From Lenisia limosa (Eukaryota > Protista > Breviatea), in assembly GCA_001655205.1 (NCBI GenBank), contig LPNZ01003674.1, positions 1-61,424 on the forward strand: DNA of 61,424 nucleotides, written 5' to 3'. The translations under genes were made by a program, and so were the position numbers. Below the pieces are notes generated by a model. The model saw only the letters and a program-made list of their open reading frames with translations, made no database searches and was not told the origin of the DNA. Of this stretch, positions 20,167 to 51,800 are shown piece by piece. Position 1 is the first letter of the stretch; each line of letters begins with the position of its first letter.

Positions 20167-23100
20167 TTATTCCTCTACAATCATGTCACTGCTCTCTTCG
20201 GGAGTGGCTTCTGTTTTCTCGGGATCTCTGTCCAGGTACTAAAAAGTGAATCCAGAATACCCCATGTCATATATCTCGATTGTATTACTATCTCATTGCT
20301 ATATATCTTGTTCCCAACGCAGCAGACCCGGCAGATGTACACGACGTCGTGGAAGGCATAATGGAGGGGGTCGCTCCCCTCGAATGTGTAGTTCTTCTCA
20401 AGTGCTGAAGCAACGCGATTGGGGAGCGTTGAGGCTGGAGGATTAACTTCAGATCTGCATTTAGGGTACATTGTATATGACACAAAACAGCTTACATTGT
20501 AAAGCTGTGGAGACAAGGCCAATGAAGGCTAGAAGCGACCAAAAATGTCCGGTCTGAAGTCATGAGGAGGGGAAAGTGAATAAAACAAGAGGTTACAGAG
20601 GCACACCTTTTGAGCGTAAGACGAGGGCATGGTTGGCGGGATCTCCTTGGCTTCGGCAATTGCCTTCTTCCGTTTCTCCCTTGCAATCGCTCTTTCCTGG
20701 GTGGTCACTCGCACAAGAGATCAGCGATGAACATACCTTCTTGAGCTCCTTAGCCGTGGCCCAGGCCAAGTCGTCTTCAATGGTTTCGTCTTCCTCATCT
20801 TCACCATCCTCAAGAAGCGAAGGGTCGAACAACACCAACCCGCCCCTTTCGGCGTCCTTGAGAAGATGTAGCGCCTCTTCCATGACATTTTCGATAAGAT
20901 CGGGCTGGCTGGCGAAAGCTCTTACCGCCACCGCGACCGGATAAAAGTGTTCCGGAGGCAGACTGCTCAAGGCTATGGCGGACACCGGGGTGGTTATTGC
21001 TTCCGAGGGCTGAAGGGTCAATAATAAGTCTAACGCTTACGAATGGAGGTGGGCAGAACGACGCCACGAATGACGAGAGAAATTCTCCAAGCTTATCCCG
21101 CTGCCTCGCCACCTGAAGTATCAACAAGGACCTTTTCAGAAAAACTGTAACCCGCCCAAATACCTTGAACATTTCAGTGACTGTTTTCTTTGCCACACGT
21201 GCGTGCTCCTGATATGTAAACAGCGAGAAAAAAAGCCCCCCCACCTCCTGAGTCATCGCAGCGAACACAACATCAATAAGTTCGGCTTTCACATTGCTGT
21301 CATCCACCTCATCATCCTCATTCTAGGTCAGAGTTAAACACTGTAATTAAATATCATATTGTATAATATGCTAGAGATGAGAAAAAATATCAGGTTGTAT
21401 CTAATAGTATGTATATGATATGTATTATTCCAATAATGTCTGCAGGCATACCTCAATATCCATAGAAGGCACAGTGGTTGGAAGAGCCACCAGACAAGAC
21501 ACACACCGAAGCGCATTATTGCGACAAGCAAGGAAGACCTTAGATCTTACAAAGCAAACAAAGACAAATAGAGTCAAAGGAAAACATGCGAGTTTGAGCG
21601 TACCGGAACCGGCGTCGTAGTATTGGTCTCAGGAACGACAATACCGGGAGATGACACGGCTCGGAGGAACTTGACACTCGGCCCAACACAGTCCGACGGT
21701 AAAGTCCCGACCCCGGCTGTGTCGGCAATGGCGGCTGTAATGAGCTCACAGGCGGATACAAGGGTGGCTAATCTAGCCTAGGTGGATGTTACGTTTGACA
21801 AAATAACAATATCTTCTTTTTGCCAAGACACACCGGTATATGTTCATCTTGCTCGGCCTCATTTGCGTCACGACTGCATGGAGTGAATAAGAAACAGATG
21901 CATGGAGTGAATAAGAAACAGATGCATGGAGTGAATAATGCTAATATGTATANNNNNNNNNNNNNNNNNNNNNNNNNNNNNNNNNNNNNNNNNNNNNNNN
22001 NNNNNNNNNNNNNNNNNNNNNNNATGCAATTGATCCGAGGCAATGAGTCAACCCCCATTCAACATAGGTAACAGGATTGAGGACTTTCTTTGCGTTCTCA
22101 TACGCCTTAGAAAACTCCGATGATGATGCGGCAGAAAGTTTGTCGATTGCCAACAGATTGACAAAATGATTAGACAAACGTGTGAAGCATGAGAGAACCA
22201 GGATGAGAGTTTCAGAGGACACACAGGTGTCTAAATGACGAGTAAGAGAATTTAGAATGGAACAACATACCTTCAGGTACGCCAGAGAAATAAGGAGGCA
22301 GAGCTTTGAGCAAATGAAGGAGACTAGAGGCAAGCGTGCCAAGGTAGTTGAGGTTCTCACGGAACAACATTGCTAATCCGAATGTAGTGGAGGACTAAAT
22401 GTCATTAGTGGTCCTTACAAGCCTTTTATCCCTTTATCTTAATTCCCCTCACCAAAATAACGTCAAGACACGTGACAGCGTTGGTGACCAACTCAGTTGG
22501 GCTGGCTTTCGGCTTTTCAGAAGAATCTCGCCCGGCTCTGCGCTTGCGTGTTCCAGTAATTTTCTGGAGATTAGATTAGCTCCTTGCAATTCAAACAAAA
22601 AGGTCCCCATTCAAGAAATGCTCACCTCCAATCTTGTTTCGATGAGTCCAGAGGCGGCAGCTGTGACACTTTCAGTGATCCACTTGACAACACGTTGGTC
22701 TTCAGGTTTGCAGAGGTATAACCCCTCAAGGAGGTTTGTGAGCGTGTTACTGAGTTCTTCCGAGGCTTTTTTGCCACAGAGGGACACAAGCAGCTCATAA
22801 GCCCTGTCAGAGAAGGAAAACTGGTCGGAGACAACTTCAACTGTGGAGTCAGGAAGGCGATAATTCAAAAAAGAAGAAGTTTCTAACCCTCCCTTCCCAC
22901 CAAGCTTGTCTCTTGCCTTGACCATCCGGTCTCTGTCGAAGCTTGGGATCTCAATCTCCGGCTCAAGAGCCCAGGGAGGGAGGTGAGCCGCAAGCTCAAA
23001 CACGTCCTTCGATGCAATCGGACTAGTCTCCACCACATGGGTCAGGAGGTCGGGAAGCAGTTCTGAAGAAATCATGGTACTTTGGCAACTCACCTCTGAT

Positions 23101-26100
23101 CTTGCAAAGGAGCTTCAGTCCAGATGAGTTGTCCATGAAGAGCTGAAAAGTGGTCTTGGATTTGGCTGAGTGGGTCAGATGATCTGTTTTGAAAAGAAAG
23201 GAGTCTGGTACACATATTGCATGTCTGAATAACTTACCATTAGTTGTGAGTCCCACAACGATAGAGGCCAAAACTGCGGTCATATTCTCTATATTGGCTT
23301 GGTTCGCTTCAATGTCGCTTACTCCATCTATGATGTAAACAATATTACTCTTCAACAATTACTCAAAAACTAGCAAAGAGTGATTGTACAACATTCTTAC
23401 ATTTTTCACTCTGAATATTCACATGCTCTCCAGCAATGAGATTGGTGATGACGTTACAAAGAGCACTCGCCAACTACAACCATCAGAGCGGAAATCACGA
23501 TCACACTAACCTCCACCAGGACAATAGCGTTGACACCAGCCACTGCAAAGTTCTTATATGCAAGTCTGGCGGCAATGAGGTTATCTTGGGACATCATCTT
23601 GCTGTGTTGAAGGTTGCTTGAAACTCGCTATGCCAGTCAAAGTACCCCCAAAAACGACAAACTTCGCTCTTAGGGACCTCGAGGTCATCTTCGACAACAA
23701 CAGGGCGAAGAAGTCGGATTAACATGGTTCGTACATCATCCTCATCAACCACTAATTGTGAGAGAACTCCTTGGATGGAGAACATCCTAAAACAATGAAG
23801 AAAACACAGGCTACTGGAGGCCAAGCCCAACTTACACATCACCGGAGTGATCCACAACACTCATGAGAAGCCGCACCATTTCAAGACGGACCTAAGGGTC
23901 ATACAATAGATGATACAGTGTGATAAAAAATAACATATATCATATACTACTGCATGTAGATGTACATATAATGTGGAAATGAGAAATTATAAGATGGTAT
24001 TGTCACCCCATCCTTAAATTGAAAGCAAACCTTGACCGCAACATCATGAATGTGATCTTCAAGTACATGAAGAACATCTGTAGTATAACAATAGTCCAAT
24101 ATATGATAAAGTCCAAGGGCTGAAGGAAGTACCCCCTACTTTTGATTGCAGTTCTTGCCAGATGTTCTTTGTCATAGAGTTCACGAAGGGCCTTGACAGC
24201 GTTTCGACGGACTTCAGCAGAACTGAAGATGAAAAGACAGCCTTTCGACCCTTATAAACACAACAAAATGCCTTTGGCAACTGGTGAACTCTCAGCTTAC
24301 TTTTTGTCACGGGCCAACTGGTCAGCAAGAGTGGCCACACCGACCGCACGCATTGTGGACGTCAAGAGCTCCCATTGCATGCGTAGAACAAGGCCTAGGG
24401 CGGCGGCGGCAATGGCTCGAACCCCTGGGTTGTTGGTCTCAGATTAACAAGAAAAAAAAAAGGGGCTTCTAATATCCGACCAAAGCAATACTGANNNNNN
24501 NNNNNNNNNNNNNNNNNNNNNNNNNNNNNNNNNNNNNNNNNNNNNNNNNNNNNNNNNNNNNNNNNNNNNNNNNNNNNNNNNNNNNNNNNNNTATGGCCCA
24601 ACTTACGAGGCACATCGTCTTTCGCAGCCATCACCAGAAGGTCGAACCTGGGGTTTAAGATGAACGATATTGTTTCAAAAAGAACAAAGAACGCTGGATG
24701 ACCATGGCAACACTCACCTTGGGGTGAGGTTTTCAGTGTCAATAGCGTCAATGAGAGGCCATCCCTTTCCCAGGACCCGCACCGACTGTGCACGCACTAA
24801 ACCGTTAAAAGTCATTCCAAAACATCACTCAGCACAAAAGAACAGCATTCGCACCAAGAGCATTGGGGCATGTTAGGTGCCTCTTCAGGAAGGGGGCAAA
24901 CAGGCGGCACACCACTTTGCTAAACTGAAGGAACGTAAGATAACAAAAGTACCACAATTAAGCAAAAACAGAGGACAGAAGAGCCAAACTCCATTACGGC
25001 TTCTTACCTCAGGATGGTTTCTCGTTTGATCCAACATCTTATCAACAACTACACCGTTAGTGGATGCTAGAACCTATCGAGAGATCATAGTCCCCCGCGA
25101 ACTTGCTGAAAGTGCGACAACCACTGAATGCGACTGAACAACAAGCACCAAACGGAAGAAATCCTGTAGACAGTCTTTTTCTGGAGGATGTTAAAACACC
25201 AGTGCTGTGATTGTTTTAAAATGAAAGGATCCACAGCCGAGCTAACCAAATGTACCCAAGAAAAAAAGGGAAGGGGAGGGGGGGAGGACACAATATTTCA
25301 TAATATCATTTAATTACATTCAAGCTAGTGGCAAGGCATAACATTCAAAAGGGTAGCAAGACGCTGGCCCCTCCCTACCAATGACGTCTTTGATGCTGGT
25401 TTCAGCCTCACGCCAGGCCCGGAAGTACACATCTGCAATAAGAGCCAAATCGTTTTGGGAGCTCTTTTGTGCAACCTGATGCATAATAAAAACCATTTTC
25501 TTGAACCAACGACACTATAATACCCCTCCAACGAGGTTGTTTTTGATAGCATCATGGATTCGTTTGACGACAGTTCCGCTGAGACGGAAGAAGTGGCAAA
25601 GAAGAGTTCGGCCGTTCTGACTACGCACAAAGCGGACATCCAAGAAGCAAGCCAGCACACGGTTGATGACGTCGCCGGACCTGCGTCGTTAGCAAGTTCA
25701 TCTTCAATGTCCGGTATCGCTCTACTTACTCAGGTTGCTCAGCATCAATAGTCTCGATAGTATGACGAGCCTTGAAAAGACGCTCAATGTCTGCAAAAGA
25801 ACAGTGAAACACCATAACAAACAACTGTAAATACTCCCTTTTTATATTTTTTTTAAATTGTTTTAGCAACTAACCAAACTAACCGGTTGTTTTCTTGCTT
25901 GCCGTATCAATGTTGCTGAGAAGAAGAGAGAAGACAACGGGAGCGATTCTCTCCCAATCATGAAGTCTATCAAGGACATAGCGCTCCAATGCCTTCAGTA
26001 CTGACGTAACCGCGTTTTGGCAAGAGGTCTCCAAGGAGTATGTGATAATGTTGTCTGGAAAATGATAAACAGATTAAGAGTTGGGAGAAGTACCATGAAG

Positions 26101-29700: not shown

Positions 29701-30652
29701 TCCACACACCCTGGATAGACATGAATCTGTCACGGTTGACCATGGCAACAATGCAGTCGCAAGCCTCGCGGTATTTGTTATTTCTCAAAAGGAACTCGAC
29801 ATATTCCTCTATCTAGATACGATCAGGAATGCTGTGAAAATAGTCATCCCTCCCTTCTTGTTGTTATTATATTACCTTATCACATTAAAACGTTAAATCC
29901 CTCCGACCTGGGCAGGCTCAAGCTGAATATAACGTCTGTAGATGAGACAAGCAGTCTCAAGAGGTACCCATGGCGAACGAGCAAACTTGACAAAGAGCGA
30001 CCAGATCCTGATGGGTGAAGTCTAGGACTGCTGTGTGTTTACTTCATTTTATACTCTATTCAAAGAAAAGGTGATGACAGGTTAATATAACAATCCTACA
30101 TCAGATGCTGAGTGATTGGAAGAGAAGAGAGCGCTTCGTCAGCCTTGCGCCTGAAGGTTGTGATGCGACGCTGGGCAAGGAGACACTCAAGATACTCCAC
30201 CCAGATTCTAGGCATCTTGTGCATTGTGATAAGGGCCCTCTCAAAGATGACGGTCAGGTTCACAAACTCTTCAGAAACAACACACTTCCCTGAGGTGTAA
30301 AACTAACAATCAAGAATCAAACCTCTGATTTGTCTCTTTCTTTCCTGTAAATATCTGTACCAGATCTTGTAAGAACCTGGAACGTGTTTGAGGGCACGCT
30401 CATAGATCTCGTTGATTGCAGAGAAGCCACCAAGTCCATTATCACGCTTTTTCAAGAACTCAATATAAAGTAACCAAGACTAATGCCGTAAAATTTCAAG
30501 GAAAATCAACAAACCTTCACTGAAAACGGGTTACGAGTACATTCTTCTTCAAAAGGGAGAGTATCTTCCTCTATTACTTCATATTCAAGATCATCAACAT
30601 CGCTGTCGCTCTGGTGAGTCTCAACTGGAGTCTCCACTTGCTCTGCCTCCAT
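26729..30652 (-). CDS. XAB2: Pre-mRNA splicing factor SYF1/XAB2 (HAT repeats), multi-exon
   Basis: EEDTLPFEEECTRNPFSVK at the N-terminus; YLWTQFAKFYEDQGDLDSAREVF, WAEMEIRH, IHKNLRLWLFRVDLEENLGT and HGNEETFREMLRIKRSVQAQF at the C-terminus. Confidence 0.95.
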
Positions 30653-30997
30653 TCTCAAAAAGAAAAAGTTTCTCCAATATAAATGTCTCCAAGAATGTAT
30701 TCTACTAGAACGTTTAATTCACGCTGAAAAGAAAAAGGGCAAAAAACGAAATCACCGGACTAAAAGCCTTTCCTTCCGTCCCGGTTTTAGGATAATTGCT
30801 CCGATTCTGTGCTCAGTCGTCCATATTTAGTAAGATCTCTCTTATTGCAAAACCCCGACAAATTGCGGAGGTTCATCAGTGAAAATAGTAGTAAAAAAAC
30901 TAAGAAAGAGGTAGTACTATTAAATACCGAAAAACTAAACAATCGTTCTTTGAGGGCGAATCAAACTACATTCCCCACTTCCTAGACCTCGTCAAAG

Positions 30998-32201
30998 ATG
31001 CAACAAGCTCACCAAACCCATTCGGTGGCTCCAAGCATCAAACCAACACATGTATGAGGGAGGGTCTTTTTTCCATCTCTGACCAAGTAGGCAAGTATTG
31101 CAAAAAAGACGTCTGAAGCTTTTGAATCAATGTCCATTAAAGTTGACACCAATGCTGCTTCAACTCACTTGCCAACCATGTGAGTGTTTCTGATTTAATG
31201 ACCCTGTATTAGGGACCCGTCACAACTTTCCCCTGTCGGCCCCACACACGTTGCAATTGCAATGGAAGAGTAGGGTCTTGGTCTTATTCGTATAAGTAAT
31301 GTCACCTCTTGCTCAACAACTTACCCACAGGTCTGAACCGTGTCATAACGCGTTGAGATGGACTTTGAAGCATATCATTCGCAGTGGTGACACTGTATGT
31401 CTATAATATTCAAAAACAAGATAATATCATTTGTATATCTATGTTGTGAGATGAAATTTGAAATTGACATATTGAATTTACATAATCAATTAGCTTTCCA
31501 TTGTGTATGTTCAGCCGGCGGTTGTACTGCCTACGCCAAGCTACGGTCTTGTTGGTGGTAGGTTCCCGATAAGTGGGTTCACTCACTAAACTTTGAAATT
31601 AATTGTCACTTGCGTTAGGAAGCTGGAATGCATACTCCCACACCAGAGAAGCTCAAGAATACGTAGAAATGGTCAGTGGGAGAAAATAATGTACTTTTAT
31701 GGCAAGTAACATTACAACTAACATTTATTAGGCTAAAAATGCTTCAGAACAACTGTTGAAAACATTTCAAGATGAAGCTGAGCAACTTTGTGGTGAAAAG
31801 AATGTATGTATATGGTTCTTTGCCTTGCTTAAAACAATCTTCACAATGTTTCAATCACATTTTTAGATTATTATTCGGTCAGTGCGGAGAGTCGGCAGTG
31901 TCAAACAGGAAGTTTGGGCCTGCTGGATAGCTGTATAACTGTATAGATACTGGCAATGTGCGAAAATGAGAATGTGGGTCACTTGGTAGTTGCAGCAAGA
32001 AACAAGAACATTTTCAAAAGGTAAAGTGATTAACTTTGAGCCAGTTGTTTGATTCTTTAGATTGATTTCTTCCAATTCAGCTGATCACTTCCAACATAAT
32101 GCTAAGGTGAGTGCGACGACAAGGAGGGAGTTATGGATATCAAGGCCTCTTTTTCACCAATATAGTGCGCTGTAACTGTTGTACATCCTGACTCTCACTA
32201 A
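30998..32201 (+). CDS. Universal stress protein (UspA) domain protein, multi-exon; start uncertain
   Basis: HVAIAMEESEPCHNALRWTLKHIIRSGDT ... VAARNKNIFKRLISSNSADHFQHNAKCAVTVVHPDSH* fits the USP N- and C-terminal motifs. Confidence 0.78.
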
Positions 32202-32386
32202 TTACAAAATGTTGACTAATTCCAAATGTTGCTTCACCTAATATAATATGTTATAATGTACTGTATACTTTATGATGAACATTGAGATCCAACAAACTAC
32301 ATTAGAAAAAAACAATGACTTCACAACCGCCTTCCTTCACAGAGAAATAAAACAACCCCAGAAACAGACACCCCCATCCCCATGCA

Positions 32387-35300
32387 TTAGACTTCAGTTT
32401 CAGCATATGTCTCATCAAAGCCGAAGGTTGCCTCTTCGCCACTCTGTAGCGACTCAGAAGTGGTCTGTTCAGCAAGTGTTGGCTCCTCAAGAAACTCAAT
32501 GTCGCACGGTTTATTTTGGGTCGGCTTCTTGCGAGATATGAACACCATTGCAGCACCTCCAACAAAGGCTATTGCAACCACTGCAACTACAATCAAAGCT
32601 GAATGTCAGTTGTAAACTATGAAGTTAATCCTCACCGAAAGTTGTCATAGATGATTCATCTGAACTGCTCACTGTCCCAAAACTGCATTTCTAAAAGGTG
32701 ATGCCCGATCGTTTTTCCAAGCCAGATCCCACTTACAGCTCCCTCATGGCTGGCTTGAATCTCAGCCTGACAGTCCCCATCCTCTCGAGTCGTTTCAATC
32801 TCAACATTGCCGCAAAGAGCCGAGCATTCTGGCTGTTGAGAAAGGCAAGGCCTTATCCTACCGTCTCCACTAGCGCTCCACGACACAACCACCGACGATG
32901 ACATGGACTGCATCTCCAGCACTACAGAATGAAAGAACCCCCAAGGCGCATTTAGCTCAAGGTACTCATAGCCACTATAAATCACATATCGAAATACGGT
33001 GTACAATTTGCAAAAAGTAAAACAGTATGAAGTCCCACAGGGAAATTATGGATTGAATATGATAAGGAGTCTACGGGGAGATTGTTGCGTGATAGTATTC
33101 ACCCAAACCTCGTGACACTGAAGATGCCACCTGCGTGCTTGACTCTTTAGTCATTAACCTGAGGGGTTAGCAAACCGTTATACCAATATTTAACATCAGA
33201 CAAAACTTCATACGTGACATTTGCCAAATCGTGAACAGCGGGTCCTAAGAGAACTGCAATTTCCATGTCATCAATCTACATGGGAAAGTAAAAATATTTT
33301 TGGGAATTTATCAATAATCAGTTATTATTCGGACCTAATTATAATACACCAAGCCAACATATTCAGAGACAACGCTGCTTTTGAAGTGGTTGTAGTCAGA
33401 AGCAAGGTCACACAAAGCACCTTCCTTACAGCCAAGGTTCAATTCAAGTTTAGCCTACAGAATAGGTATAATTAGAATATTAAAAAAACAGACCTTGATA
33501 TAGCTGTCAGCTGTTCGGATGGTGACTGTTGTTGTGGATTCAGTATGAACATGTGTCATTGAGAGTGCCTAAGCAGCAATAAAAGGGAAACCAGCTTCAC
33601 TTCGAAACCAAAAAACACTAATTCCTCTCAAAATTCTGATACTTAACAGACGCCACAAAACCAACCAGGGAGGATGACGTGGAGCTTGAAATAAACGCAT
33701 CAACAATTCTTGGGCTAGCAGCCTCGAGAGTTGTGTGTGTTGCGTATGCGGTGGTGGAAGAAAGGCTCGGCGTTTCAGAAGTTCTGAAAAAGTCAAAAGA
33801 ATCTATAGTGTTCAGCTCGTGTGATACTGTCAGCTCATCAAAACAGACCGGAATTGTGGTGGCATGCCCGGATTAAGAGCATCAGTAGCCCCTCGTAGGA
33901 TTTCAGTTGAGGGAGATGGAGGGTCATTGAGCAGCTGAACTGTAAGAACTTTTTAACTATCTCTCAAAGAACAATCCACTGACATTCATATCATAGTCAT
34001 AAGCCTTGATTTCTTTCAAGTAGATGAGAGTGGAGTCACCATTTTCAATGCTCCAGCCAGAAAAGTTCAGACAAAAACTGTCAATATCTGACATGTCTAA
34101 AGAGATTAAACAATATCTTGGAGAAGACTGGCTCAAAACAGCAACTGATCTTGGATTACGAATCTCAAAAATAGAGTCATTGAGGCTACATCCCTTACCG
34201 TCGGCTCGAGGGGATCGTGAGCTTCGGATTTCGTTCCTCAAAATGTCAACTGTGACAAACGATCCCTTCGTTGTAACCGATTTCTAGGGGGGGGGGGTGA
34301 GACAACCAGAAATGCATAGAAGTATGAAATTGAACTTGTTCTTCCAAGCGCAACACAGTTTCCTTTCAACAATTTAGTTGAGTAAAACCCTTTCAACCTT
34401 TGCCCAGAAGTAATCCGAACCCGAAGTGGTCGTGCTTTCACTGGGCCAGCGGAGAAGGAATTCCATAGCTAAAAGCGTGAAACCCTTCCTTAGTACCCTA
34501 ATTTGAGTAGTTTGAACAAAAGGATTATCAATTCTCTGAACCAACAAGGTTTATCAGATTCGAAGGCTAAGGTGACGGATATTTTACCGAGGGTTGACCA
34601 ATCCTCAGGAGCTGCTCTACAAATCTGAAGTGTGAAAACTAAAAGCAGCATCACTCCGCAATACGGCTGTAAGGTTTTCCACCTACTCCTCCAAGGTTAC
34701 TGTCAACTAGGGCAACGGCACTGCTAAGGAACGTACCTTGCCTAAACTCATCAGTACTGGGGGATGTAAAGATGCAATCTTCTTGTTTTACAGTTTAGGT
34801 TTCCAGCCAATTGAATCGCGGCCCTACCTCAGTGCTTGTTCATTCCAGAGTGACAACTGTATGGAAGAGAAAGTGTTTGAGAAGTAAACACCCGAAAGAA
34901 TCTACACAGTAAAACAATCCCAAAATTCTATCCCAGAAAGAATGACAGTCCCACTTGGTAGGCGGCAAATTCTTCAGCCTTGATAGTTTCACCCTTCACG
35001 TTCGTGATGTAGCCCCTGGGTATTATAACTTGAGAAACATTGAAGAGGCGGAGCAGAAAAGAAATCGAAGAAAAAACTCCCCACCATTCAACGTCTGTGA
35101 AGCTATCAGGGAAGGCAAGATCGTTAACAGGCAAACTACGAAGGGGGGAGGCCGAAGGTGAGTTGAAATGCGTAAGTGGGGCGTCCCATGTCTGGCTCTT
35201 GTGGATGAGAACAATACGAGAATGCTAGGCAAACCATGAGAACGCCATCAATGGAAGAAGCACCCAAAACGGATAAGATGACGGACGGGCCGGATCGAGG

Positions 35301-38300
35301 TCGAATTACCCAGCTTGCTCGCCAGGCCTCGTAATTTGTAGAGCTGGAGGGTAAATAGGCAAAAATATCCTTGAAAAGAGGAATACAAAAGGTTAATTTG
35401 ACCAAAGCCTTCCATCACGTTACTGCAGAATATCAAAATGAAAAGTCAAATGATATTGTTATCAAAAATATTCTTCCCACTTTTTACTGGCAATTGGCCC
35501 TGACGCTGCCATGTTAAACTGTGCCAAGTCACATGATGTCACTGAAATATTAAAACTCCCTCGGTAAAAGAGGAAGAAAGCAGCATACAAAAGGCTGATG
35601 ATCTTCCGTCAGCTGAGGGCTGAGACTTCCCATTCATAAGAATGGCACTGTGGCTTGCTGTTCGTTTGTAGTACTCCTAAATAATAAAGACGGGACGTAT
35701 GGCGAAAGGCTTACCGAGTGAATGTCCATTGCGTATGACCCAGACCCTTGGTCATAGGTCACCTGGGCTGTCAAAATGAAAAGGTTGTCGTTTCAAGACA
35801 AGCCCTTCTCACCTCATGACCTGCGTCATAAATGACCACTGAGAGTTTGTCGAAGTGGCCATGCCACCCTCCTTGCGGCCCGGCCTTGACATGCATGTAG
35901 GTCGTTTCTGTCAATGAGACTCAGCACAGTAGAGCAAAATTACCTTCGAAGTTTCCCGAAAGAGGTGGACCTCTGAGGATATACGTCCCCATCTCCTCCA
36001 AGAATGCTGATGAAATGGCCGTTTGCGCTAATGGATTAATGGATGAGTCCGAGCCTGACTTCTCTTTGATACCTCAAAGATCGAAGATTTTCGACAATTA
36101 CGATGATATTCGGGAACACAGTAGTATAGAAAGGGGCCATATTTGTAGGACATACAAGCATTGCGCTCACTCATCGCGTTTATTAAGATGTGATTTTTTA
36201 GAAGCCCGGCACTAGTTTTAGGGTCGTTTGAAAAAAAAATCCGTCCTACAAAATGCTTGTATGTCCTACAAAATATTTTTAAATATCATATATGGCCCCT
36301 TTCTATACTACTGAACACAATGTAGATAAGTCCTACCTTGCGGGACAGGATCCACAAAATAGCTGTAGTCTCCATACTGCTCTTTCTCGTGTTGCTGAAT
36401 GATGACTTAAGTTAAAAGATTCAGGCATACCTGTGTCAACATTGTGATACCAGCCTCGTAAAGAGAGCGGCGTTCGGGGTCTCTAATCAGGCCAAGTTGA
36501 ATCGCACCCTTTAACGTGAACAACTCACTCACCTGAACCCACCAAAAAACTGAGCAATCTTGTTGTGCCTGCATCATTGACACGAGGCATAGTCATCATG
36601 GGAGTTATTGGGACTACTGGAGTAAACCAAAGAGCTTTATCATAATACTTACCAAATGCAACAGCAAACATATCTGAAAATCGCTTTGAGCCCGATGAAT
36701 GCGTTTTCGGCACCTACAAGATAATCACTTCCAGATAATCAAGATGAAAATCGCACAATACTTGCTCACATACCTCAATTTCATAAAGGTTCGTTCCTGT
36801 GTTGTATAAGGCTTCAAACAGCGGCATGTATGCACTCAGAGTGAAAGTATGGTAGCCAAACGAGCCTTCGTACCACATTCCATCGTCAAGCATCGAGTTC
36901 TGGAGGTGATAAACAACGCCTGCAGTGATTACTGAGAGGGAATTAATTGCAAACCATTGGTAGGGTCGTCAATGACTGAAGTAACGGTGTCAGAATCCCC
37001 AATTGCAAGAGCTGTGGTATTATTCGATACTTCAAAAGATGACAAAACAAACCTCCCATTATCATTGCAGCATTGTGAAAAGCTTGCCAGTTGCTCTTGC
37101 CCCTAAAAAAACTAAGGACTACCACCATACCAAGACTCGGCTTTCAAGCCCACTTACGCTCTATGTGCGGAGAGAGTGCTATACATCGGACGAATAAGGT
37201 TATACTCAATGAAAGCCTCTTGCGAATCGGTCATGGTATGAAGCACCATATCGAAGATATTTGACAGTGACATGAAAAAACCTGACTCGTCCTAATAGTC
37301 GTAAGAAATATAATAAATGAATGGCAGAAATGAGAGTGATACCCCCCCCCCCCNNNNNNNNNNNNNNNNNNNNNNNNNNNNNNNNNNNNNNNNNNNNNNN
37401 NNNNNNNNNNNNNNNNNNNNNNNNNNNNNNNNNNNNNNNNNNNNNTAAGACTTGTCCTGCTTCTGGTGATTAGTGTATATCCGGCTGTAGTTTAACAGCA
37501 TTTCAACAGCCTAAAAGGTAAAAAGTGAAGAAAGACAGGCTTTAAAACCTGGTTGAACACTAGATCTTTGAGATCTTGATCAGTCGAAAGCCAAGCCGCA
37601 AGACACGCGTCATCCATATTGCCAACATTGCGCCGGTTGCGTGAGGCTCTCCAAGCCTCATGTAATTTTTCAGAACTATACCGTTGACCTAAACAGTAAA
37701 CACTAAAACGGTGCACAACTTACCATCTGTTTCACAAAAGTGGCTATAGGGTTGGTCGTACTCCCAGTTGAGGTATGTTCCATCAGGACTCACGAAGTAC
37801 ATTCCCCATTGGCCTGCGAATCATTGGGGAAAAGAACAGGATAGCACAAAGTGGAAATATAACTCACCCCAGCCTGGCCACCAGTCATATCGATACGTTG
37901 TGTTTATTGCAGATGCAACATCCAACATTTTGGAGTAAACAGTACCAGTTGTATCAGCTTGAGGAGTTAGATAAAAGACAAAAAGAGAGAAAGTAAGTCA
38001 AACACTCACGGTTATCAATAATACGCTGTCTGATAGTTTCAATTTCATTAATATCAAAACGAATTGAGGGTCTTGTACTGCAAACGTGAGTCAGTCAACT
38101 TGAAACAAGAAAAATAGAATCCACTCACGCAGGAGCACTCGATGCTACTGCTTTATTGATAACAAAATTCTGTGGACTGCTTGGTCCGTATCCTGGGGTG
38201 TAAGTGCACAGTACCACCAATGAGAGCATGTTTGTTGACAAAGAGCTAACCTAGAGTCTCAACCTCATAAACAATGGTCACTTTATCTGGTCCCGTGTAG

Positions 38301-41300
38301 CCTAAACAGGTTAAATTCAACTTGTTACTGGTAATACTGTGGGCATAATAAAACGAAATCATTGTCAAAAATTTGGCCTAGAAATAATTTCACAAAGCTC
38401 TATAAAAAATACTCATACCTTCTTGAATTGAGACATCAGCAATCAAATTGGCATATTCGCTCTCAGAATTAAAAGTTGGGGGTGCTAAACAGTTATATAT
38501 GGCAATAAGGTTTTGTGATTTTCCCCAAGAACCCACTAATATATACAAGCATCCCGGAAGGCGGCAGAGTTTTGAGGCTAATTGTGGTGGCACTGTCACC
38601 CAGAAGTGCGTATCTAGTCATATATTATTGAAAAAAAATAAACCTTCAATAATGGAAAACCAATCCATTCCTAACATAAAAACTTCTCAAAAAATTTATT
38701 TATTTATTGAGACATGAATGATATAATAACTGAGCCGATATTCCAATATTCTCACTTTTGAAACTCCATAATAGCTTGAAACTCCATTCCTTCAGGAACA
38801 AAAAGCTCTCTCGTCTGTTGTGTGAGGTATAAATTCTAACTGAAAACACAAGCCTGATACTCACATTAAAATCTCTGAAGGTAACACCAGCAGGCTGGAC
38901 ACCCAAGATAACATCGTCAATACAGACAGTTCCTGATATCAGGGTTAAGGGATCTGATAACAAGCTGGGTTGGGGAAGACACCTTACCATTCCATGATGA
39001 AGCTGAAGTTGAGACAGAAATTACAGCACTATCTTCGACATTGAAACTGCCTCCAAAGGCTGTGAATGACAAAATAGGCAGGCTAAGAGAATATTAAAAG
39101 CTAAAACGGGAAGGCGGTGAGCGAATTTGATTTATAAAAGACATCTGCAACAGTATATAAAGGCCATTGGAAGTAGGTTCACAGATAAAGAGCTTCAACG
39201 CACAAATGTGAGGTGAAGGAGTCAGACTGAACAAGGGCGATTGTACTCGAGTGACCCGAAGCTACAACGTTTAAAAACATTTTACTTGTAGATCTTACTT
39301 TGGGCAGCATTGCTGAGAGATACTGTTAGAGTAGCGTCAGATGGCGTATTCTATACTATCATATGCGAAACTTAAATATCATAATATGAATGTACACGCT
39401 CAAACCTGGGGAAGCAGAGCAAGGAAGACGCCGGCAGTTTCAATTGTTAAGAGTCCTTCAATGTCGGATGAGATTATCGCAGTTGTGTCACTGGCCAAAC
39501 ACGATGAATAAGCCCCAGTGAAGGACTGGATATACCTGGAAGAGTGAAGTGGTTCAGTGTTTAAGATATGGTCCTTTGAGGGGCATAAGAATGCAAAAAA
39601 AGAACATGAATAGGGAAGTAACACAAACCTTGAGAAAGCAGAAGGAACTACTCTTTCACTGTCTAAAAATGAATTAAACAAAATATCAAGACAGAGGGGG
39701 AAACGATGTATAGCATACCCAAAAGATTTATCGAGGCTAACGAAGAAAACTCCCTGAACTTGATATTGGTCAAATGTACCGCTAAATCAAAGTTAAATCG
39801 CCAGCAAGCAGAAAAAACAATATTTAGAAAACTCATAAACCAACTAGTGATAGTCGAAACACTAAAAACAACAGAGGAGCAGTTCGAAGTTAAATCCATT
39901 CTGAAAACATGAACACTCTTTAAAAACTTAAGGGAAGCAAGTAAATTGATTAACCACCAAATAACTCACAGGAAAGTTTTCCACTGGGCTTCAAGGGAAA
40001 AGGTTTGACTGACCATGCAGCCAGCCACAGTGAGAGAAGTTAATCCTAATGATTAGAGTTTATAAAATTGGAAACAAAACATTGACATATCATATCATAT
40101 CATTCTACTATGATATGTCAACGTTCTCAAGAGTAAAACGATAATGGATGCATGAAATGCAATTTGAGGGCCAATGTCAACGTTCTCAAGAGCAAAACGA
40201 TAATGGTATGCATGAAATGCAATTTAAATCATGAGTCCACTCACTTTGCACTTTCGTTTTCTCCAATCACAATATATAATATAGCGATGATATATTGTTA
40301 TAATAGCGTAAGTATACACATACACTTACCACGATAAGTCCTGACATGGATAGAGAACTATCTTGAGACAATCGTGTCAGGACTTATTGCGATCAGTAGT
40401 GTATACTATGGTACTATCACCTATTATACACACATCAGATTATCTTAAAACAACTTAAACACACCTTTCGCTGAAAACGACAAAACCGAGTCTGTCGATG
40501 CCGTTACTACCTTGAGGGCCAATGTCAACGTTCTCAAGAGTAAAACGATAATGGTATGCATGAAATGCAATTTAAATCATGAGTCCACTCACTTTGCACT
40601 TTCGTTTTCTCCAATCACAACACTACCAAATGATTCAGTACTGACCTACCTTGGTAAGAGAGCAGATACTAAACACAATGTAAAGAGAAAATAGCGTTGG
40701 CACAATTATTTAACATCCCAACTCTGAAATTGCCCGATAAGGCTGCTGAAAAGGAGGAATCAACAAGGGCTGGTGCAAATACAGGTCCAGGGGTTCCACT
40801 ACAAATTTGGAATCCTGAGACTTTATAGTAATCATCTAGGAAGTTAAATGCTATTCAGGTGAATTTATATCCTACCAGGGTTAACAACATTGGACCATCC
40901 AGAGGCTCTGAAAACAATGTTGTCCACTTTTGAAAAATGGGGCTAGATTGTGTAATCAGTTGGAATGCATTACAAAAAGCGAAAAAAACATACCTCAACC
41001 GGAGATCGAGTCACTCTCATGTCGGACAGTCTTGTAGAGTCAAAAGAGGTGAACAAATTTGCTACATACCGGATAGACCAGAATTTCCACCCAGAGTAGT
41101 CTGTCTCAAGAACTTGCGAAAAATAACTGAAACTTCCATCAGGAGGCTTGCTGCCCATATACAGGAGAAGCTGTGATCCTAAATATTATTGAGTCTTCCC
41201 TGAAAACCATTTTCCGTATTGTCTTCAACCAATTTAACTCATCGGGATTATATTTCAGGATTAAATGGTACTATACATCAAATGCAGTGGTTTTACGTTC

Positions 41301-41837
41301 TGGACATAAGGTTACCAAAATAAAATAAAAATCATAAAAACCTTAAAGATCTGAGCTTCTTTTGTAAGGAAAATAAAAACTCAATAAAAGTTTTTAAAAA
41401 ACTAATTGATAGAACCCGCCCCATAATCTTGTAAAAAACAAAAGTCAAATGCTACTTTTTAAAGAGACTACCGCTTCCTTCTGTTGACGATGAATGAATC
41501 CAAAAAGATACGAAAGAAAACTGCGACCAATCATTCGGAATATGATCACTGTCAGGGTAGAGTGATGTTCTAAAGAGTAAGTTGAATCTCAAAGAGTGTT
41601 TACTCTTTGTGCGGGTTCCAGAGAACAGTTGAATTGGACATCATAGCATCTGTGCTGACTCCATCCGAACCAATCCACTCTGAAGGATGTCATTAATCAT
41701 AGTAAGAACTCTCCAAATTTAAACCACATACCCAGCGATTCTGAATGCCCAATATCAAAACAAAGCGACACATCGCTTGCACTACTGATTGTTGCAGAAA
41801 ATAGTGCAAAAAGAGCAAGACACAACAAAATCGCCAT
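32387..41837 (-). CDS. Large type-I membrane protein: signal peptide, CBM-like domain, alginate-lyase plus heparinase II/III module, second CBM-like domain, TM helix, short tail; may be two adjacent genes
   Basis: Signal peptide MAILLCLALFALFSATISSA. Lyase motifs: TRPSIRFDINEIETIRQRI, GQWGMYFVSPDG..HFCETDG, SNWQAFHNAAM, DDGMWYEGSFGYH, GGWHGHFDKLSVVIYDAG, YYKRTASHSAILMNGKSQ. TM LIVVAVVAIAFVGGAAMVFI followed by SRKK. Continuity across about 38100-40700 was not fully traced. Confidence 0.8.
36119..36313. mobile_element. MITE-like element (195 bp) inside an intron of the lyase gene
   Basis: Perfect 24-bp terminal inverted repeats (CAGTAGTATAGAAAGGGGCCATAT at 36119-36142 and 36290-36313), a second perfect 20-bp inverted pair (36143-36162 / 36252-36271), and AACA directly on both flanks. 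Confidence 0.8.
40115..40620. repeat. Local duplication: 109-bp segment at 40164-40272 and 40512-40620, plus a partial third copy at 40115-40165
   Basis: Near-identical copies (1 mismatch) containing a splice donor, a short intron and an acceptor of the minus-strand gene. Confidence 0.9.
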
Positions 41838-41903
41838 TTGTTCTTTCCCAGCCTAAGAGATGAAGGTGATGTGCTAGTGTTAAGAGAGTTCAAGCCAGAT
41901 TCA

Positions 41904-42254
41904 AGGGGGTCAAGCTCTCAGGGAAACATACTCCCCCATCCTCCTCCTCTATTTTTTTTTAGCTCCTCCCCTTCCCCATTTCAACTCCCATTTACCCAAC
42001 TTGACAATAAGGCAAAGCGGCTGCAAGGGTTTGTAAAAAAATAATTTTTGTTAAATTTTACAAAAAACAAAATAATTTAATCACTCATTTATATTATTAA
42101 ATGGAGATACCCATACATTCAGAAGTACATGAATAAAACAGAAATAATCCAAAGAGCTTGTAGAAACCTGGGAAAACGTCCCACACCCAAATCCCTCCAC
42201 CTCCCCACATCCCTCCTCCCCCATGAGTGGGTTTTCCTGGGAGCTTGACCCCCT
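41904..42254. mobile_element. MITE-like element (about 350 bp) in the divergent promoter between the lyase and cathepsin B genes
   Basis: 30-bp terminal inverted repeats, 26/30 identical (41904-41933 / 42225-42254), flanked by near-identical direct repeats (A)GCCAGATTCA / (G)GCCAGACTCA. Confidence 0.72.
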
Positions 42255-42488
42255 GGCCAGACTCAATGATTCATAGCACAATGAACAATGAACATATTCT
42301 TGTTCAAGCACCACCATATCCTCCCCCACCTTCTTTTCTTTTTTGGTGCTGCAAGCAATGCTGCTGTGCTGCTGCAATGACAATGATTGAATGATGATAA
42401 AAAAAATTTAGATCCAGTTAATAAGATCGCGGCCGGAACACGTTTTGAAATTTTTTGGGATCCTTTTCCCACAATTAAAACAGCCAAG

Positions 42489-44016
42489 ATGTTTCGTGTT
42501 TTGCTGCTGTTGATCACATGTGCTTGTGCTTTTGCACTTGACTTTTCTAAAATTGCTGAGGAAGTTAATTCTATGGTAGGTAGCCAACAGAGAGATATGC
42601 TTTACATTTCAGGAGACCAGTTGGACTGCAACTACACCATCCTTTAAGTCTGTTGATGAAGTTGGTGAAAATATCTTTTTTCTTTCCTCATGATTTAGGT
42701 GACTGTTTTACTTGGAAAACTCAAGGAAGAACCTGAACTTTTGGTTAGTTACTTATTTTGATGTTTGTTTTATTCAATAGGAGTTCCGTGCTCCCTATTT
42801 TGAACATGAAATAACTGAGGACCTCCCTGAAAGCTTCCACCCTTCTGAGAAGTGGCCTATGTGGGTATTTTTGTTTTTGGGTGGTATTTGCTCTTTTTTT
42901 TTTTTCAGCCTTTCTATCAGATTTCTTCTGATTTGATCATATATTAGGTGTGACTTTGAGCACGTTCGGGATCAATCAACCTGTGGTTCATGCTGGTATG
43001 CTTTATTATTAGATAATACAATTGAGTTTCTCTTCTTTCCCATTTAATTTTCCAACAATTAATTTACCTTAGGGCATTTGGAATGGTAGAAGCATTTACT
43101 GATCGTATTTGTATTGCCACCCAAGGCAAGATGACTCCATACATTTCCGCAAACAATCTTCTTGACTGCTGTTCATCTTGTGGTGATGGGTAGGCAATTT
43201 GGTTTCAATCAGTTATATTCTTTTCATATGAGATAGATCTACATATCAATAATATATGTGTATGTATCCATATGCCCTTATGATATAGCAATGAATATGG
43301 GGTGGGTTGCAATTTCAGTTTTTCACCTGGATAGTTGCCAAGGTGGTTGGCCTTCAGTTGCCTGGAATTATGCCCGCACTACCGGTATTGTTACTGGTGG
43401 TGACTTCGGTACCAAGAAAGGCTGTCAGACATATCCCTTTGCCCCTTGTGCCCATCATGTTGTTTCTGAGAAGTATGAGCCCTGTGGACCAATTCAACCC
43501 ACTCCCCGTTGCCAACATCATTGTGAAGTTTGCCAGATTGATATTTTATTCATGTTTAGGATTCATCACAAGATTACTCTTCTGATAAATGGTACGTTTC
43601 CAGCGCCAACTCTTTCCGTGGTGAAAAGAATATGATGGCTGAAATCTACCATAATGGACCCATGGAGATTGCCATTGAAGTTTACGGAGATGTAAGGAAT
43701 GTTTCTCTTTTTATTACTCTTTAGTTCCCCACTTATCATTCTGGTGTTTACAGACATGTTTCGGGAAGCTATTTAGGTGGTCACGCAGTCAAGCTTGTTG
43801 GATGGGGAGTTGAAGATGATGGCACTAAGTACTGGCTTGTTGCTAACAGTAAGAATCATCTTCCTCCTCACAATTAGGCTGGAATGAAACTTGGGGTGAC
43901 AATGGATTCATTAAAATTCTCCGTGGTGTTGACGAGGTTTGAGTGATGGAATAAATGTTATTATTCTTTAGGTTGGTATCGAGTCTGAAGGCTCTGCCGG
44001 AGTTCCCAAACTCTAA
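42489..44016 (+). CDS. CTSB: Cathepsin B (papain family C1A) with signal peptide, multi-exon
   Basis: [36 protein letters not shown], occluding-loop [31 protein letters not shown]. Confidence 0.97.
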
Positions 44017-48810: not shown

Positions 48811-51800
48811 TCAAAAGTTATGAAAAGCTTCAGAAAGTTGTTTGTCAAAATCTCTTGGGTCACCCAACGCATTTATATACGTTCCTCTCTGTGACTCTTC
48901 AGAAATAGCCTACTAAAGTTAGGTTTTTTTTGGGATGTGTCAGAGTTCCACAATTGAAGAAACATGACAAAGCGCCAGAATACCAGCATAATGTTGAAAT
49001 CTTCTTTGTGACTCAGACTCAAATCATAACTGAAGGGTGAAATCAAAAGGGACGGTAGCGGGCTGTTGATCAACAGCCCCTGGTAAAGTGGTACCATGTG
49101 CCCCCCTCCCCTTTCCATATCATATGATGTATTATTGGACAAATTGTATTCAGTATGACAAACTCCAGCGTCCCCTCCCCTCCCGATACCACATGCACCG
49201 ACATGGCTGTATCATTGCCATTATGATGTGACACATACAGTATAATAATAAAACAATAAACCACGCTCAGTGGTGTTGTAGGTCAAGGCTCGTGAATGTA
49301 AAAGAGAATAACAAATTACCCCCATTTGCATATTGGAGAGACCATTTGCATATTGGAGAGGCCATTTACATATTGGAGAGGCCATTTGCATATTGGAAAG
49401 GCCATTTGCATATTGGGGGGGGGGGGGCATTTGAANNNNNNNNNNNNNNNNNNNNNNNNNNNNNNNNNNNNNNNNNNNNNNNNNNNNNNNNNNNNNNNNN
49501 NNNNNNNNNNNNNNNNNNNNNNNNNNNNNNNNNNNNNNNNNGCAATACATCCCAGTCTACGGGGTGTAATATTGGAGGCTTTGGGATCAATACTACCCAG
49601 TCGTTTCACCAGACTTTTTATTACTATCTGCTCTGTGATAAGTGTTCAACCAACCACATATTCTTGATGAAAGATTGAGAAGCAGGAACTTCATCAGCTT
49701 CCTTCAGGTACTCAATTAATGCCAACGCCTTACGTTTGTAGTATTCAATCGTTGTTTCAAACGAGATTGTCCATAAGGCAACAGGAAGAGCCTACTCTTA
49801 TCATTGCGTATTACAAAAAAAGAAAGTTCAATCAGACACAACGTAAAATCATATCAGGGCACTTAGGGAATCCTTAAAAGTTATGTAATCCTCAAACCAC
49901 TGTCTGCTTCAATAAAGTGTCAACCAGTGGTGCTATGGTTTTAAATTCTGTATATAAGTCTCTATAAGGGGTAAGAGAGGTTACCATTTGAAATCACTCA
50001 CGATGGCACGAGTGGCTTGGGAAGATCAGGGTCACCTAAAAAGGAATGTGAACAGAGATTGCCTTACTCGTGTATTCCCTTATTTCTTGAAGATAGTTGA
50101 TTCTAAGAATTGAATAATGATTGTACATCGGGGGTCTTAATACCTTAAACTTGTCAATATCTAGAGTTCGTGAGACAAACCAAATAATAACATCACTCCC
50201 CATTTGAAGCCCATCATACCAATTATAGATAGTGGCAACCTTGAGGAAATAGCCATATGTAAATTCAATTCGCCCTATAGCTTGTTTAATAAAAGTCGCT
50301 TTACTCACTGGGAAAAGTCCTTGAAGGTACAGTCCTGGAATGAAAGAAGATGAATCAGAGAGGTGTTGTGCAGAGTCCCTTTGATTGATTTCAAGAAAAA
50401 AGGCAAGCATTTCAATCATCTACATCATTAAAAAGAATATGTGCAGCCCAACATTATTCACCCTTTCTTTGTTTTTTCCAATAACGACCGCAGTACGAAA
50501 TGTTGTCAAAAAGGAGGTAACTGCGCTAAAAGATGAGTCCTCTTACGGAAAATGTCATACAAACTCATCCAATGACAATATGAGATAATAATATACTAAC
50601 TACATATTATATGTACATAGTAGATAATATATACGATATATAGCTGTGTAAAAATCTATACACGTATGTATATCAAATGTTATACCTGCAACAGCTTACA
50701 TAGCAAAAAATGAATAGTTGAGATTTTCTGTCATCGGATTTGTTTCCATCTTGAAAGGTGGAAGACGAAGTGGCCAAAGAGTCTCAAAATTCATGGCAAA
50801 CTTCTCAACAGATTTATCAAACAAGGCAAGAGCAGAACGGAAGTCCTAAGCTGTAAGTGAATACATGTTTGAAACCAACAAGATCAACCATAAAGTGGCT
50901 CAGATCTGATCCCAATTCATGTATGTTTGGTTCCAACTAAAGAATAAGTACAAAAACAACAACATCACTCACATTAGGCCTTAACACCAGATATCGTTTT
51001 AAGTGATCATAAGGTATGGAAATTAGGAGCACGTAGATCTTCTCAGCTTTTCCCTTTATAGCTGATGGGACAGAAAACACAACACCAATGCTTATGGCGT
51101 CAAACTTCTCTAACATTAGAAACTAAAACTGTTACAGATGGTTTAAGGCTAATGTGCAGAATCTGAACTCATAACAACAACATACTTTTTGTTCCATGCC
51201 TGCAGACATTTCACGGCAAATTTCACCTGAAATTGTTGACTTAAAAATATATCCAGCATCGTACCCCACTCTTCATACCATTCAGCGCATGGGCCATGAA
51301 TTCAGCTTGATCCGGGTGGCCAAAGTAATTCAGCCCCTTCCATCTTCGAATACACTTGGGCCCTGTTATATCATCCCAGTTGACAATCATAATGTTCTTG
51401 ATGACTTTGCTGTCCTTAAGAGTCGGGTCATCTTCTGTGGAGGATTAAAGTGATGGTATTCCTTCATATCTCTAAACATCCTGAAAGCTTCCCCCTTCAG
51501 TCGTTAATAATATATTATACCTTTTAGGCTTATCAAAATGACTTTTTATTATTTCATTTTTTTAAAAAAACCGCAATATTCTTACTGACATCGAGATGTC
51601 ACAGGTACTTTACGCACAAAAACTTAAACAGAAAATCAACAAGTTTTTTAAACACCTCATTGTTATTGTTATATAAGGAGAGAAGACAATATCATATAAA
51701 GATTGGAGAACAGCCATTCATACCAAGATGAACTTCAGCTATTGGTTCTTCTTCTTGGGTTTTGTTTTTCACAAAGCCCATAAAAGTACCGAAAAGGCTT
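48811..51800 (-). CDS. C9orf72: C9orf72-like DENN-fold protein, multi-exon; 5' end uncertain; N gap lies in an intron
   Basis: VNWDDITGPKCIRRW, AEFMAHALNGEICR, FIPGLYLQGL, DIDKFKVLRPP, YKRKALALIEYL and EDFNIMLAISEE follow human C9orf72 (YWDNILGP, LANHTLNGEI, GLFVQGL, HRKALTLIKYI, GDLNIIMALAE). Confidence 0.82.
49321..49416. repeat. 20-bp tandem repeat (GCCATTTGCATATTGGAGAG), about 5 copies, ending in a G run just before an N gap
   Basis: Directly visible. Confidence 0.95.

Follow-up and report, generated by a model that had tools for sequence, protein, structure and literature searches.

A probable surface-anchored, PL17-like uronate lyase gene in the breviate Lenisia limosa

The 61,424-nucleotide (nt) stretch of DNA analysed here, from the single-celled, anaerobic Lenisia limosa (GenBank assembly GCA_001655205.1, contig LPNZ01003674.1; hereafter the window), carries on its minus strand what is probably one intron-rich nuclear gene of ∼9.45 kb. 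Its 45 exons would encode a secretory-pathway protein of ∼1,450 amino acids (aa), a surface-anchored lyase resembling those of polysaccharide lyase family 17 (PL17). An earlier note on the window, made from its letters alone, had listed a series of lyase-like peptides in this region. Every peptide that it quoted falls in minus-strand stop-free segments between 41852 and 32390, at the position given, and each could be located in an exon. Its proposal that the gene spans from a signal peptide (41837) to a stop (32387) also held up, with a chain of GT..AG introns joining the two in frame. The gene is real, expressed and spliced over most of 32300–38299; the 5′ third and two internal stretches we infer from sequence rather than from RNA.

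The RNA evidence comes from contigs of a poly(A) metatranscriptome run (2016), the one RNA run containing the locus, examined over 32300–38299. Six RNA contigs in this range contain 17 minus-strand GT..AG joints between 32598 and 38010 (14 listed plus three recovered from loose ends; GT..AG after small shifts). The confirmed introns are 33–309 nt long, and reading frames are open across the joints. Depth arithmetic adds three joints in one contig, including a tandem (NAGNAG) acceptor. At this acceptor (CAGTAG, 36614–36619), the arithmetic fits use of the distal TAG, with one Val codon dropped. That spliceosomal introns are removed in poly(A) RNA marks this as a nuclear eukaryotic gene. Contig depth is 25.8 at the 3′ end (32300–33407) and then, going 5′-wards, 5.15, 4.1, 4.16, 2.3 and ∼2.

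In the gene model, GT..AG borders are seen in 43 of the 43 fully read introns; the remaining intron begins inside an assembly gap. The exons form two chains, each with an open frame: 15 exons (508 codons) from the ATG at 41837 to the gap, and 30 exons (926 codons) from 37291 to the stop at 32387, the latter with RNA joints as anchors. The modules follow one another in the order signal peptide, CBM11-like carbohydrate-binding module (CBM), linker, toroid, heparinase II/III C-domain, second CBM-like module, Ser/Thr stalk, transmembrane (TM) helix and 47-aa acidic tail. The parts of the model are as follows, with Kyte–Doolittle (KD) hydropathy values.

32387–41837, minus strand: the whole modelled gene, 45 exons and ∼1,449 codons (∼15 of them in the assembly gap), from splice models, RNA joints and homology.
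41732–41837, minus strand: exon 1, with the ATG and a signal-peptide-like N-terminus (top hydrophobic 19-mer, KD 2.22); donor GTATGT; upstream of the RNA-examined range.
40876–41679, minus strand: N-terminal CBM11-like module in four exons (41679–41604, 41569–41472, 41178–40994 and 40942–40876), by homology.
39060–40875, minus strand: long intron of 1,816 nt, predicted by the splice model.
38129–39059, minus strand: end of the CBM-like module (GTVCIDDV strand) and linker, in exons 39059–38988, 38932–38861, 38613–38435, 38377–38282 and 38250–38129, with an open frame and GT..AG introns.
36543–38077, minus strand: (α/α)-toroid (Alginate_lyase-type) exons, by alignment to relatives, with RNA on 36812–36543 by depth arithmetic.
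37724–37813, minus strand: exon with GQWGMYFVSPDG..HFCETDG, a peptide listed by the earlier note.
37354–37445, no strand: assembly gap, 92 N in the window, with a true length of 48 nt.
37053–37102, minus strand: exon with the listed SNWQAFHNAAM (Asn motif SNWQAFHN).
36774–36919, minus strand: exon with the listed GMWYEGSFGYH (putative catalytic Tyr motif WYEGSFGYH), matching Pfam Alginate_lyase positions 223–251.
35589–36508, minus strand: domain junction and first half of the heparinase II/III C-domain, with RNA-confirmed joints, an open frame across the joints and a Pfam Hepar_II_III_C match.
35813–35907, minus strand: exon with the listed GGWHGHFDKLS.
35715–35762, minus strand: RNA-confirmed exon with D..GSY.
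35589–35676, minus strand: RNA-confirmed exon with the listed YYKRTASHSAILMNGKSQ, and SHS..NGKSQ.
35136–35480, minus strand: ambiguous stretch without RNA coverage, at best guess one exon (35343–35218) between two introns.
33980–35135, minus strand: remainder of the β-sandwich and second CBM-like module; exons 35135–35085, 35015–34955 and 34901–34828 are in RNA, and 34688–34546, 34468–34389 and 34283–33980 are predicted.
33494–33939, minus strand: Ser/Thr/Pro-rich stalk exons 33939–33849, 33783–33666 and 33568–33494, on an RNA contig (33395–33788) with a loose end joining to 33854.
33455–33493, minus strand: 39-nt intron-like element, with a GTCTGT donor, CTAAT, a pyrimidine run and a TAG acceptor.
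32636–33454, minus strand: six exons for Ser-rich, Cys-containing juxtamembrane sequence, with every joint within one RNA contig (depth 25.8).
32387–32598, minus strand: last exon, with the TM helix (KD 2.86), a basic stop-transfer sequence, the 47-aa tail and the stop, from RNA and hydropathy.

The core of the protein has clear relatives. Once spliced, it aligns over ∼450 residues with the environmental homolog P0065 (E = 6e-73) and, again over ∼450 residues, with the ‘alginate lyase family protein’ KAH3756650.1 of Pelomyxa schiedti (E = 2e-66). The best-matching relatives pass both Pfam cut-offs (PF05426 Alginate_lyase and PF07940 Hepar_II_III_C). An exhaustive search with the Tyr-motif exon returned 62 proteins, and all 10 of those tested carry Hepar_II_III_C plus Alginate_lyase and/or Hepar_II_III_N. 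Pfam searches on single exons of the window gave sub-threshold matches that keep the family order, namely Alginate_lyase 223–251 (14.9 bits; cut-off 22.2) and Hepar_II_III_C 21–56 (23.9 bits; cut-off 24) and 73–98 (13.8 bits). As the earlier note proposed, the motifs occur in the order of (α/α)-toroid plus heparinase II/III lyases.

Single exons compared to solved structures gave chance matches to plant O-methyltransferases alone, and a homolog profile was required. Using a subfamily profile built from 12 relatives, we obtained E = 2e-70 to 6e-59 for the PL17 alginate lyase structures 9IRQ, 8BDD, 7BJT and 4NEI. The corresponding values were 5e-22 for PL39, 2e-19 for PL12 heparinase III, 4e-15 for PL15, 1e-5 for PL21 heparinase II and 3e-4 for dermatan-sulfate epimerase (DSE; 6HZN). 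Because PL17 is far ahead of PL15, PL12 and PL21 in this search, the data point to a PL17-related subfamily and not a mosaic. Hence, of the PL17/PL15/PL12-like mosaic suggested earlier, the PL17-like part stands and the mosaic does not. Beyond the lyase core, the homolog C-domain HMM (hidden Markov model) matched nothing past profile position ∼117, and pairwise matches of the C-terminal 600 aa all fell short of significance (best E = 0.19; phmmer 0.0013). Pfam searches on the C-terminal exons returned nothing but a sub-threshold chance match to CUB_CDCP1_1 in the last exon (17.8 bits; cut-off 27).

Much of the predicted active site is retained. Among 53 columns with at least 90% conservation in the subfamily, 44 are kept in the window protein and five are changed; the other four are unaligned or map to the gap. 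Conserved residues that are kept include the Asn of SNWQ, the Tyr of GYH, both His of HGH, and the following Asp, Tyr and His. The Tyr of WYEGSFGYH is invariant in the subfamily and aligns to the Tyr of YYQRY in PL17 structures (the acid, Tyr258 in Alg17c and Tyr264 in Smlt2602). Subfamily-invariant columns also contain GGWHGHFDKL (the Smlt2602 His418 motif, G-H-G-H-x-D-K-L), the D of YDQG and the H of ASHS. The HGH, Asp and His residues are presumed metal ligands, by analogy with the Alg17c structure. In Smlt2602, the mutants N207L and Y264F are dead, and the acid/base roles were assigned by the authors to the Tyr and His418 (PMC4765187).

The N-terminal part of the model is tied to the family by homology. 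Exons of the CBM11-like module hold the motifs DWS..FW, S.DGSFSYF..GWK and ASGW, and an HMM of the homologs’ N-terminus matches them collinearly (positions 50–94, E = 1.3e-5; 92–130, E = 0.09; 143–159, E = 0.009; search space, 124 segments). The spliced N-terminal peptide matched the CBM-like modules of family members in blastp (E = 5e-11 to 1e-5), and the spacing from this module to the lyase equals that in P0065. The linker exons (38129–39059) show weak collinear matches to the linker of the homologs, and RNA covers 38237–38129 alone among them. On the other side of the lyase, the second CBM-like module contains the motif string SRWK..EDWS..SESTTTSGSDYF..SRSP. Exon choice over 34827–33980 was guided by collinear likeness to the CBM-like module of the homologs (SRWK, DWS, SE..S.G.DY, SRSP), a likeness that is non-significant alone. 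Two splice guesses, an exon at 34624–34588 (for 34827–34389) and a 20-nt micro-exon (for 35480–35136), broke the frame or conflicted with the homologs and were replaced. Contig ends were also tried as exon-end marks (upstream exon ending in AG); the AGGT donor was not found. The domains listed in the earlier note, lyase and TM parts, are present in the model; the two flanking CBM11-like modules had been missed.

Two other features of the exons and introns may be mentioned here. The long intron is ∼6 times the length of any other in the gene and contains a 109-nt direct repeat (40164–40272 and 40512–40620; 99% identical, spacing 348), which could represent a short mobile or otherwise repeated element. 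Two different exons encode the hexapeptide EAWRAS, as HEAWRASRN (37640–37663) and as YEAWRASW (35310–35333), the second of these exons being a predicted one. Outside the gene, AT skew of the plus strand flips near 42500, positive over 30000–42500 and negative beyond, suggesting that the next transcription unit is on the other strand.

The assembly gap at 37354–37445 had been suspected of hiding a conserved catalytic-domain exon. A single 11.3-kb DNA contig crosses it, with 48 letters replacing the 92 N. Because one contig covers both sides, the flanks are continuous and collinear. The exon from 37510 is still open where it runs into the gap, 2 nt beyond a codon boundary; 3′ of the gap there is a G run and 61 nt of intron sequence, rich in pyrimidines and closed by TAG, before a phase-0 exon opens at 37291. 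From the phase on either side, it follows that the gap holds 1+3n coding bases plus a donor site, and not a separate exon. What the gap hides is the 3′ end of the 37510 exon, at most 15 codons, along with the donor. Relatives have ∼15 residues at this position, with a near-invariant Arg and an invariant Gln (GGR...QTL). The window, a scaffolded eukaryotic draft sequence, contains seven N runs of 71–117 nt (9346–9462, 12331–12419, 18869–18959, 21953–22023, 24495–24591, 37354–37445 and 49436–49541). Given that the tested run is truly 48 nt, the sizes shown for the remaining runs probably cannot be relied on either. At position 34286, the spanning DNA contig has one extra G versus the window (C12 versus C11 on the minus strand); this run lies in the pyrimidine tract of a modelled intron, just before the acceptor at 34284, and the frame is unaffected.

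Several observations weigh against the reading of one gene for an anchored, active lyase. The RNA contigs give no coverage of 33865–34827, 35138–35499 and 36813–38005 within 32300–38299, and 38300–41837 lies outside the RNA-examined range, the 5′ third resting on homology. When splice paths were enumerated for 35541–35135, 248 of the 803 candidate GT..AG paths kept the frame open; with so many open paths, frame continuity in 35136–35480 is no evidence. The conserved Arg/Gln segment, which includes the substrate-binding Arg143/Gln153 of Smlt2602, maps to the unread gap. In the window protein and its whole subfamily, the PL17 Asn-His pair (Asn201/His202 in Alg17c) is Asn-Trp (SNWQ versus HNHG), and the subfamily has NWQ..WHN where relatives have NHQ..WYN. 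The loop of Alg17c that holds the base, Tyr450 (10 residues by count), is absent from the subfamily alignment, in which an invariant Tyr (GSY in the window) lies 11 residues before the Tyr450 position. Tested activity for any member of the subfamily was not found in the literature. Finally, the sole RNA contig across 33455–33493 (33395–33788, with its loose end to 33854) retains the 39-nt element, and reading through the element yields 12 hydrophobic residues and then an in-frame TAG. This contig (depth 5.15) and that of the TM tail (25.8) overlap by 13 nt and are unjoined, which fits two transcripts.

The last of these points raises the question of whether the TM segment belongs to the lyase. 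The lyase might instead end at the TAG within the 39-nt element, its 12-residue hydrophobic C-terminus leaving it glycosylphosphatidylinositol (GPI)-anchored or secreted like its amoebozoan relatives, with ∼33407–32387 forming a separate, higher-expressed gene whose product would be a small type-I membrane protein rich in Ser. Retention of the element in the only RNA contig that covers it favours this arrangement, as do the contig ends at 33395 and 33407, the five-fold step in depth, an ATG (MEIAVLLGP...) in the next exon, and the C-termini of the eukaryotic homologs, where a Ser-rich segment leads straight into a hydrophobic, GPI-signal-like tail. Nevertheless, we consider it unlikely. The two sides share one reading frame, with no stop between the TAG and the next exon, composition is Ser/Thr-rich on both sides of the element, the contig shows no poly(A) letters at 33395, and low-depth contig breaks are common elsewhere in the transcript. 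The element itself has all the hallmarks of an intron: its GTCTGT donor recurs unchanged in an intron confirmed by RNA, and its 39 nt are divisible by three, such that removal keeps the frame. In a codon-usage score trained on the remainder of the gene, the element scores as intron (−12.7 bits), whereas the following exon (33454–33359) scores +9.0 bits in the linking frame versus −7.4 and −40.5 in the others.

On balance, a spliced, TM-anchored form quite likely exists, and retained and spliced isoforms may coexist. The last seven exons (33454–32387) are joined in one RNA contig, and the predicted type-I layout consists of two clear hydrophobic segments (KD 2.22 and 2.86) joined in frame by the GT..AG chain, the 33494/33454 joint being modelled. 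The earlier note had described a TM helix and an acidic tail of ∼50 aa; the 47-aa tail is indeed there in a joinable frame, although its link to the lyase runs through a modelled joint where the RNA contig keeps 39 nt and a stop. The tail has 12 acidic and three basic residues and a predicted C-terminal ETEV, encoded at 32390–32401. We take this ending to fit the class-I PDZ-ligand pattern (S/T-x-V), possibly by chance. One could imagine that the 39-nt element serves as a regulated switch, with retention giving a hydrophobic GPI-signal-like tail or release and splicing giving the type-I TM form, but we regard this as rather improbable.

Two further alternatives concern the lyase itself. The protein could have kept the fold and lost the lyase activity, acting as a receptor or adhesin for acidic polysaccharides that signals or is sorted via its tail, or as a uronate C5-epimerase like DSE. 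The Asn-Trp in place of the PL17 Asn-His pair and the missing Tyr450 loop would be in keeping with such a role, two CBM-like modules with a TM segment and an ETEV-ended tail would suit a receptor, and the profile touches 6HZN. However, the retention of the Asn, the acid Tyr, the HGH His pair, the Asp/His ligands and another invariant Tyr would be unexpected for a dead enzyme, and the PL17 match is ∼65 orders of magnitude better than the epimerase match. Moreover, Smlt2602 tolerates an aromatic residue at this place, with H208F having ∼30% activity on alginate and gaining activity on poly-glucuronate (PMC4765187). Because H208F is still active, an aromatic residue after the Asn is compatible with catalysis, and specificity may shift from alginate. 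We therefore give little credence to a non-lyase, while the Asn-Trp replacement argues for caution on alginate as the substrate; by analogy, the His of the PL17 pair may be dispensable and the substrate preference may differ.

It is more doubtful still that the 5′ part is a gene of its own, with the signal peptide and CBM-like exons (41837–38282) separate from a lyase gene whose start codon is the ATG at 38229 and whose product opens with a brief hydrophobic segment. This ATG was our first choice for the gene start and was dropped after HMM and blastp searches found the collinear CBM-like module (41679–38861). An RNA contig does end at 38237, just upstream of the ATG, there is an in-frame stop at ∼38253 in continuous DNA, and the joining intron is only 31 nt. 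But the depth there is 2, the floor of the assembler, and the N-terminus at 38229 makes a poor signal peptide and that at 41837 a strong one. Furthermore, the upstream frame stops a few nt before the ATG, leaving no room for a 3′ untranslated region and a promoter, and in the homologs a single chain carries all three parts, CBM-like module, linker and lyase, with order and spacing unchanged. From the position of this stop and the one-chain homologs, we read exon 38250–38129 as internal, following a 31-nt intron.

Going by source names, most of the family comes from bacteria (Acidobacteriota, Myxococcota, Armatimonadota and Chloroflexota), and a terminal MYXO-CTERM tag is found on many of the long proteins. 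A quick maximum-likelihood tree built from 76 core sequences has a branch with an SH-aLRT (Shimodaira–Hasegawa-like approximate likelihood ratio test) value of 95 that places nine of them on one side, namely the window protein, Pelomyxa, two EukProt transcripts (one from Physarum) and five environmental sequences. The environmental members look eukaryotic, with P0065 on an mRNA-sized contig and P0010 adjoining a Rax2-domain gene. P0010, which has a GPI-like tail, lies at L002:2461–3777 on a gene-dense JGI metagenome contig of 26.9 kb, pointing to an intron-poor eukaryote. Long-branch attraction may play a part, given the great length of the window protein's branch (2.4) and the skewed composition of the group. 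Independent support for the eukaryotic grouping comes from an insertion following the Tyr motif, which the window protein has in common with Pelomyxa, P0010 and P0044 and which the aligned bacterial P0063 and P0061 lack. Most of the eukaryotic relatives end in a hydrophobic C-terminus that we read as GPI-signal-like. Because the nearest relatives are eukaryotic, the gene is not a lone recent import from bacteria, and the idea that a bacterial lyase was freshly re-engineered here gives way to a grouping with Pelomyxa, Physarum and eukaryote-like sequences of the same architecture. A full-length breviate ortholog was not found in two large protein searches, and no paper on this lyase family in protists was found in the literature.

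Comparison to known systems brings out what is particular to the window protein. PL17 oligo-alginate lyases (Alg17c of Saccharophagus degradans, 4NEI/4OJZ; Smlt2602; AlgL17, 9IRQ) share with it the toroid and β-sandwich, the neutralising Asn, the acid Tyr (Y258 in Alg17c), the HGH His and the presumed metal ligands. Identity is ∼25%, and the window protein differs in having Trp for His202 and no Tyr450 loop. These characterised enzymes are bacterial, ∼700–750 aa long, and without the CBM-like modules, stalk and anchor of the window protein. The homologs from Pelomyxa (KAH3756650.1), Physarum (EukProt) and the environment (P0065–67, P0010) belong to the same subfamily (SNWQ..WHN), are 28–33% identical to the window protein and share its module order (a CBM11-like module, then the linker, the lyase and another CBM-like module). 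They have a GPI-signal-like C-terminus or no anchor, however, and none has a TM segment with a cytosolic tail. The nearest bacterial group in the tree, Myxococcota proteins annotated ‘heparinase II/III family’ (such as P0063, P0169 and P0233), resembles the window protein in length (∼1,300–1,460 aa), N-terminal CBM_11, SNWQ and C-terminal surface anchoring. It differs in its prokaryotic sorting signal and lack of introns, and the aligned P0063 is without the eukaryotic insertion. DSE is a eukaryotic membrane-bound enzyme with a lyase-type toroid and β-sandwich, and its uronic-acid targets are processed within the secretory pathway; relative to the window protein, it is very distant in sequence, animal-restricted, and an epimerase rather than a lyase. 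Reviews list eukaryotic alginate lyases in PL7 (Pyropia), PL8 (fungi) and PL14 (molluscs) only and treat PL17 as essentially bacterial (PMC11468063, PMC13709232). Like the predicted window enzyme, these PL7, PL8 and PL14 proteins are uronate lyases, but they are soluble and of unrelated folds and families.

Enzyme activity, substrate and topology we infer from the sequence. The core would be a PL17-like uronate lyase, an (α/α)-toroid plus β-sandwich with a His/Asp/His metal site, flanked on both sides by CBM11-like modules that would bind carbohydrate. A Ser/Thr-rich, glycosylation-prone stalk would space the core from the membrane, where a single TM helix and short acidic cytosolic tail would fix it. 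With this predicted anatomy of signal peptide, CBM-like modules, lyase core, stalk and anchor, the catalytic part may be expected to face the cell exterior or the lumen of the phagosome or lysosome. Its most likely activity would be β-elimination of uronic-acid polysaccharides, with capsules or biofilm matrix, whether of prey or of attached bacteria, as likely targets. The organism is a bacterivore with epibiotic bacteria (PMC12453579), which makes capsular and matrix polyuronates obvious candidates.

These findings place a PL17-related subfamily among eukaryotes, here in an intron-invaded and expressed gene. With related copies in amoebae, the gene is unusual rather than unique, and a clade that includes Amoebozoa and a breviate implies that acquisition was old or that the gene was passed among protists. 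Anchoring differs by lineage: the nearest bacterial group uses MYXO-CTERM, the amoebae GPI-like tails, and the window protein probably a TM helix followed by a cytosolic tail. A different anchor in each lineage suggests that tethering to the surface of the producer is a conserved requirement. The natural Asn-Trp variant, seen beside the glucuronan gain of H208F, offers a lead on substrate specificity. Were the 39-nt element to act as a switch, one gene would yield shed or lipid-anchored as well as TM forms of the lyase, to strip prey capsules or manage attached epibionts, and the ETEV-ended cytosolic tail could couple the lyase to sorting or phagocytic machinery. For a bacterivore with attached bacteria, a surface lyase would be a plausible tool to breach capsules and biofilm.

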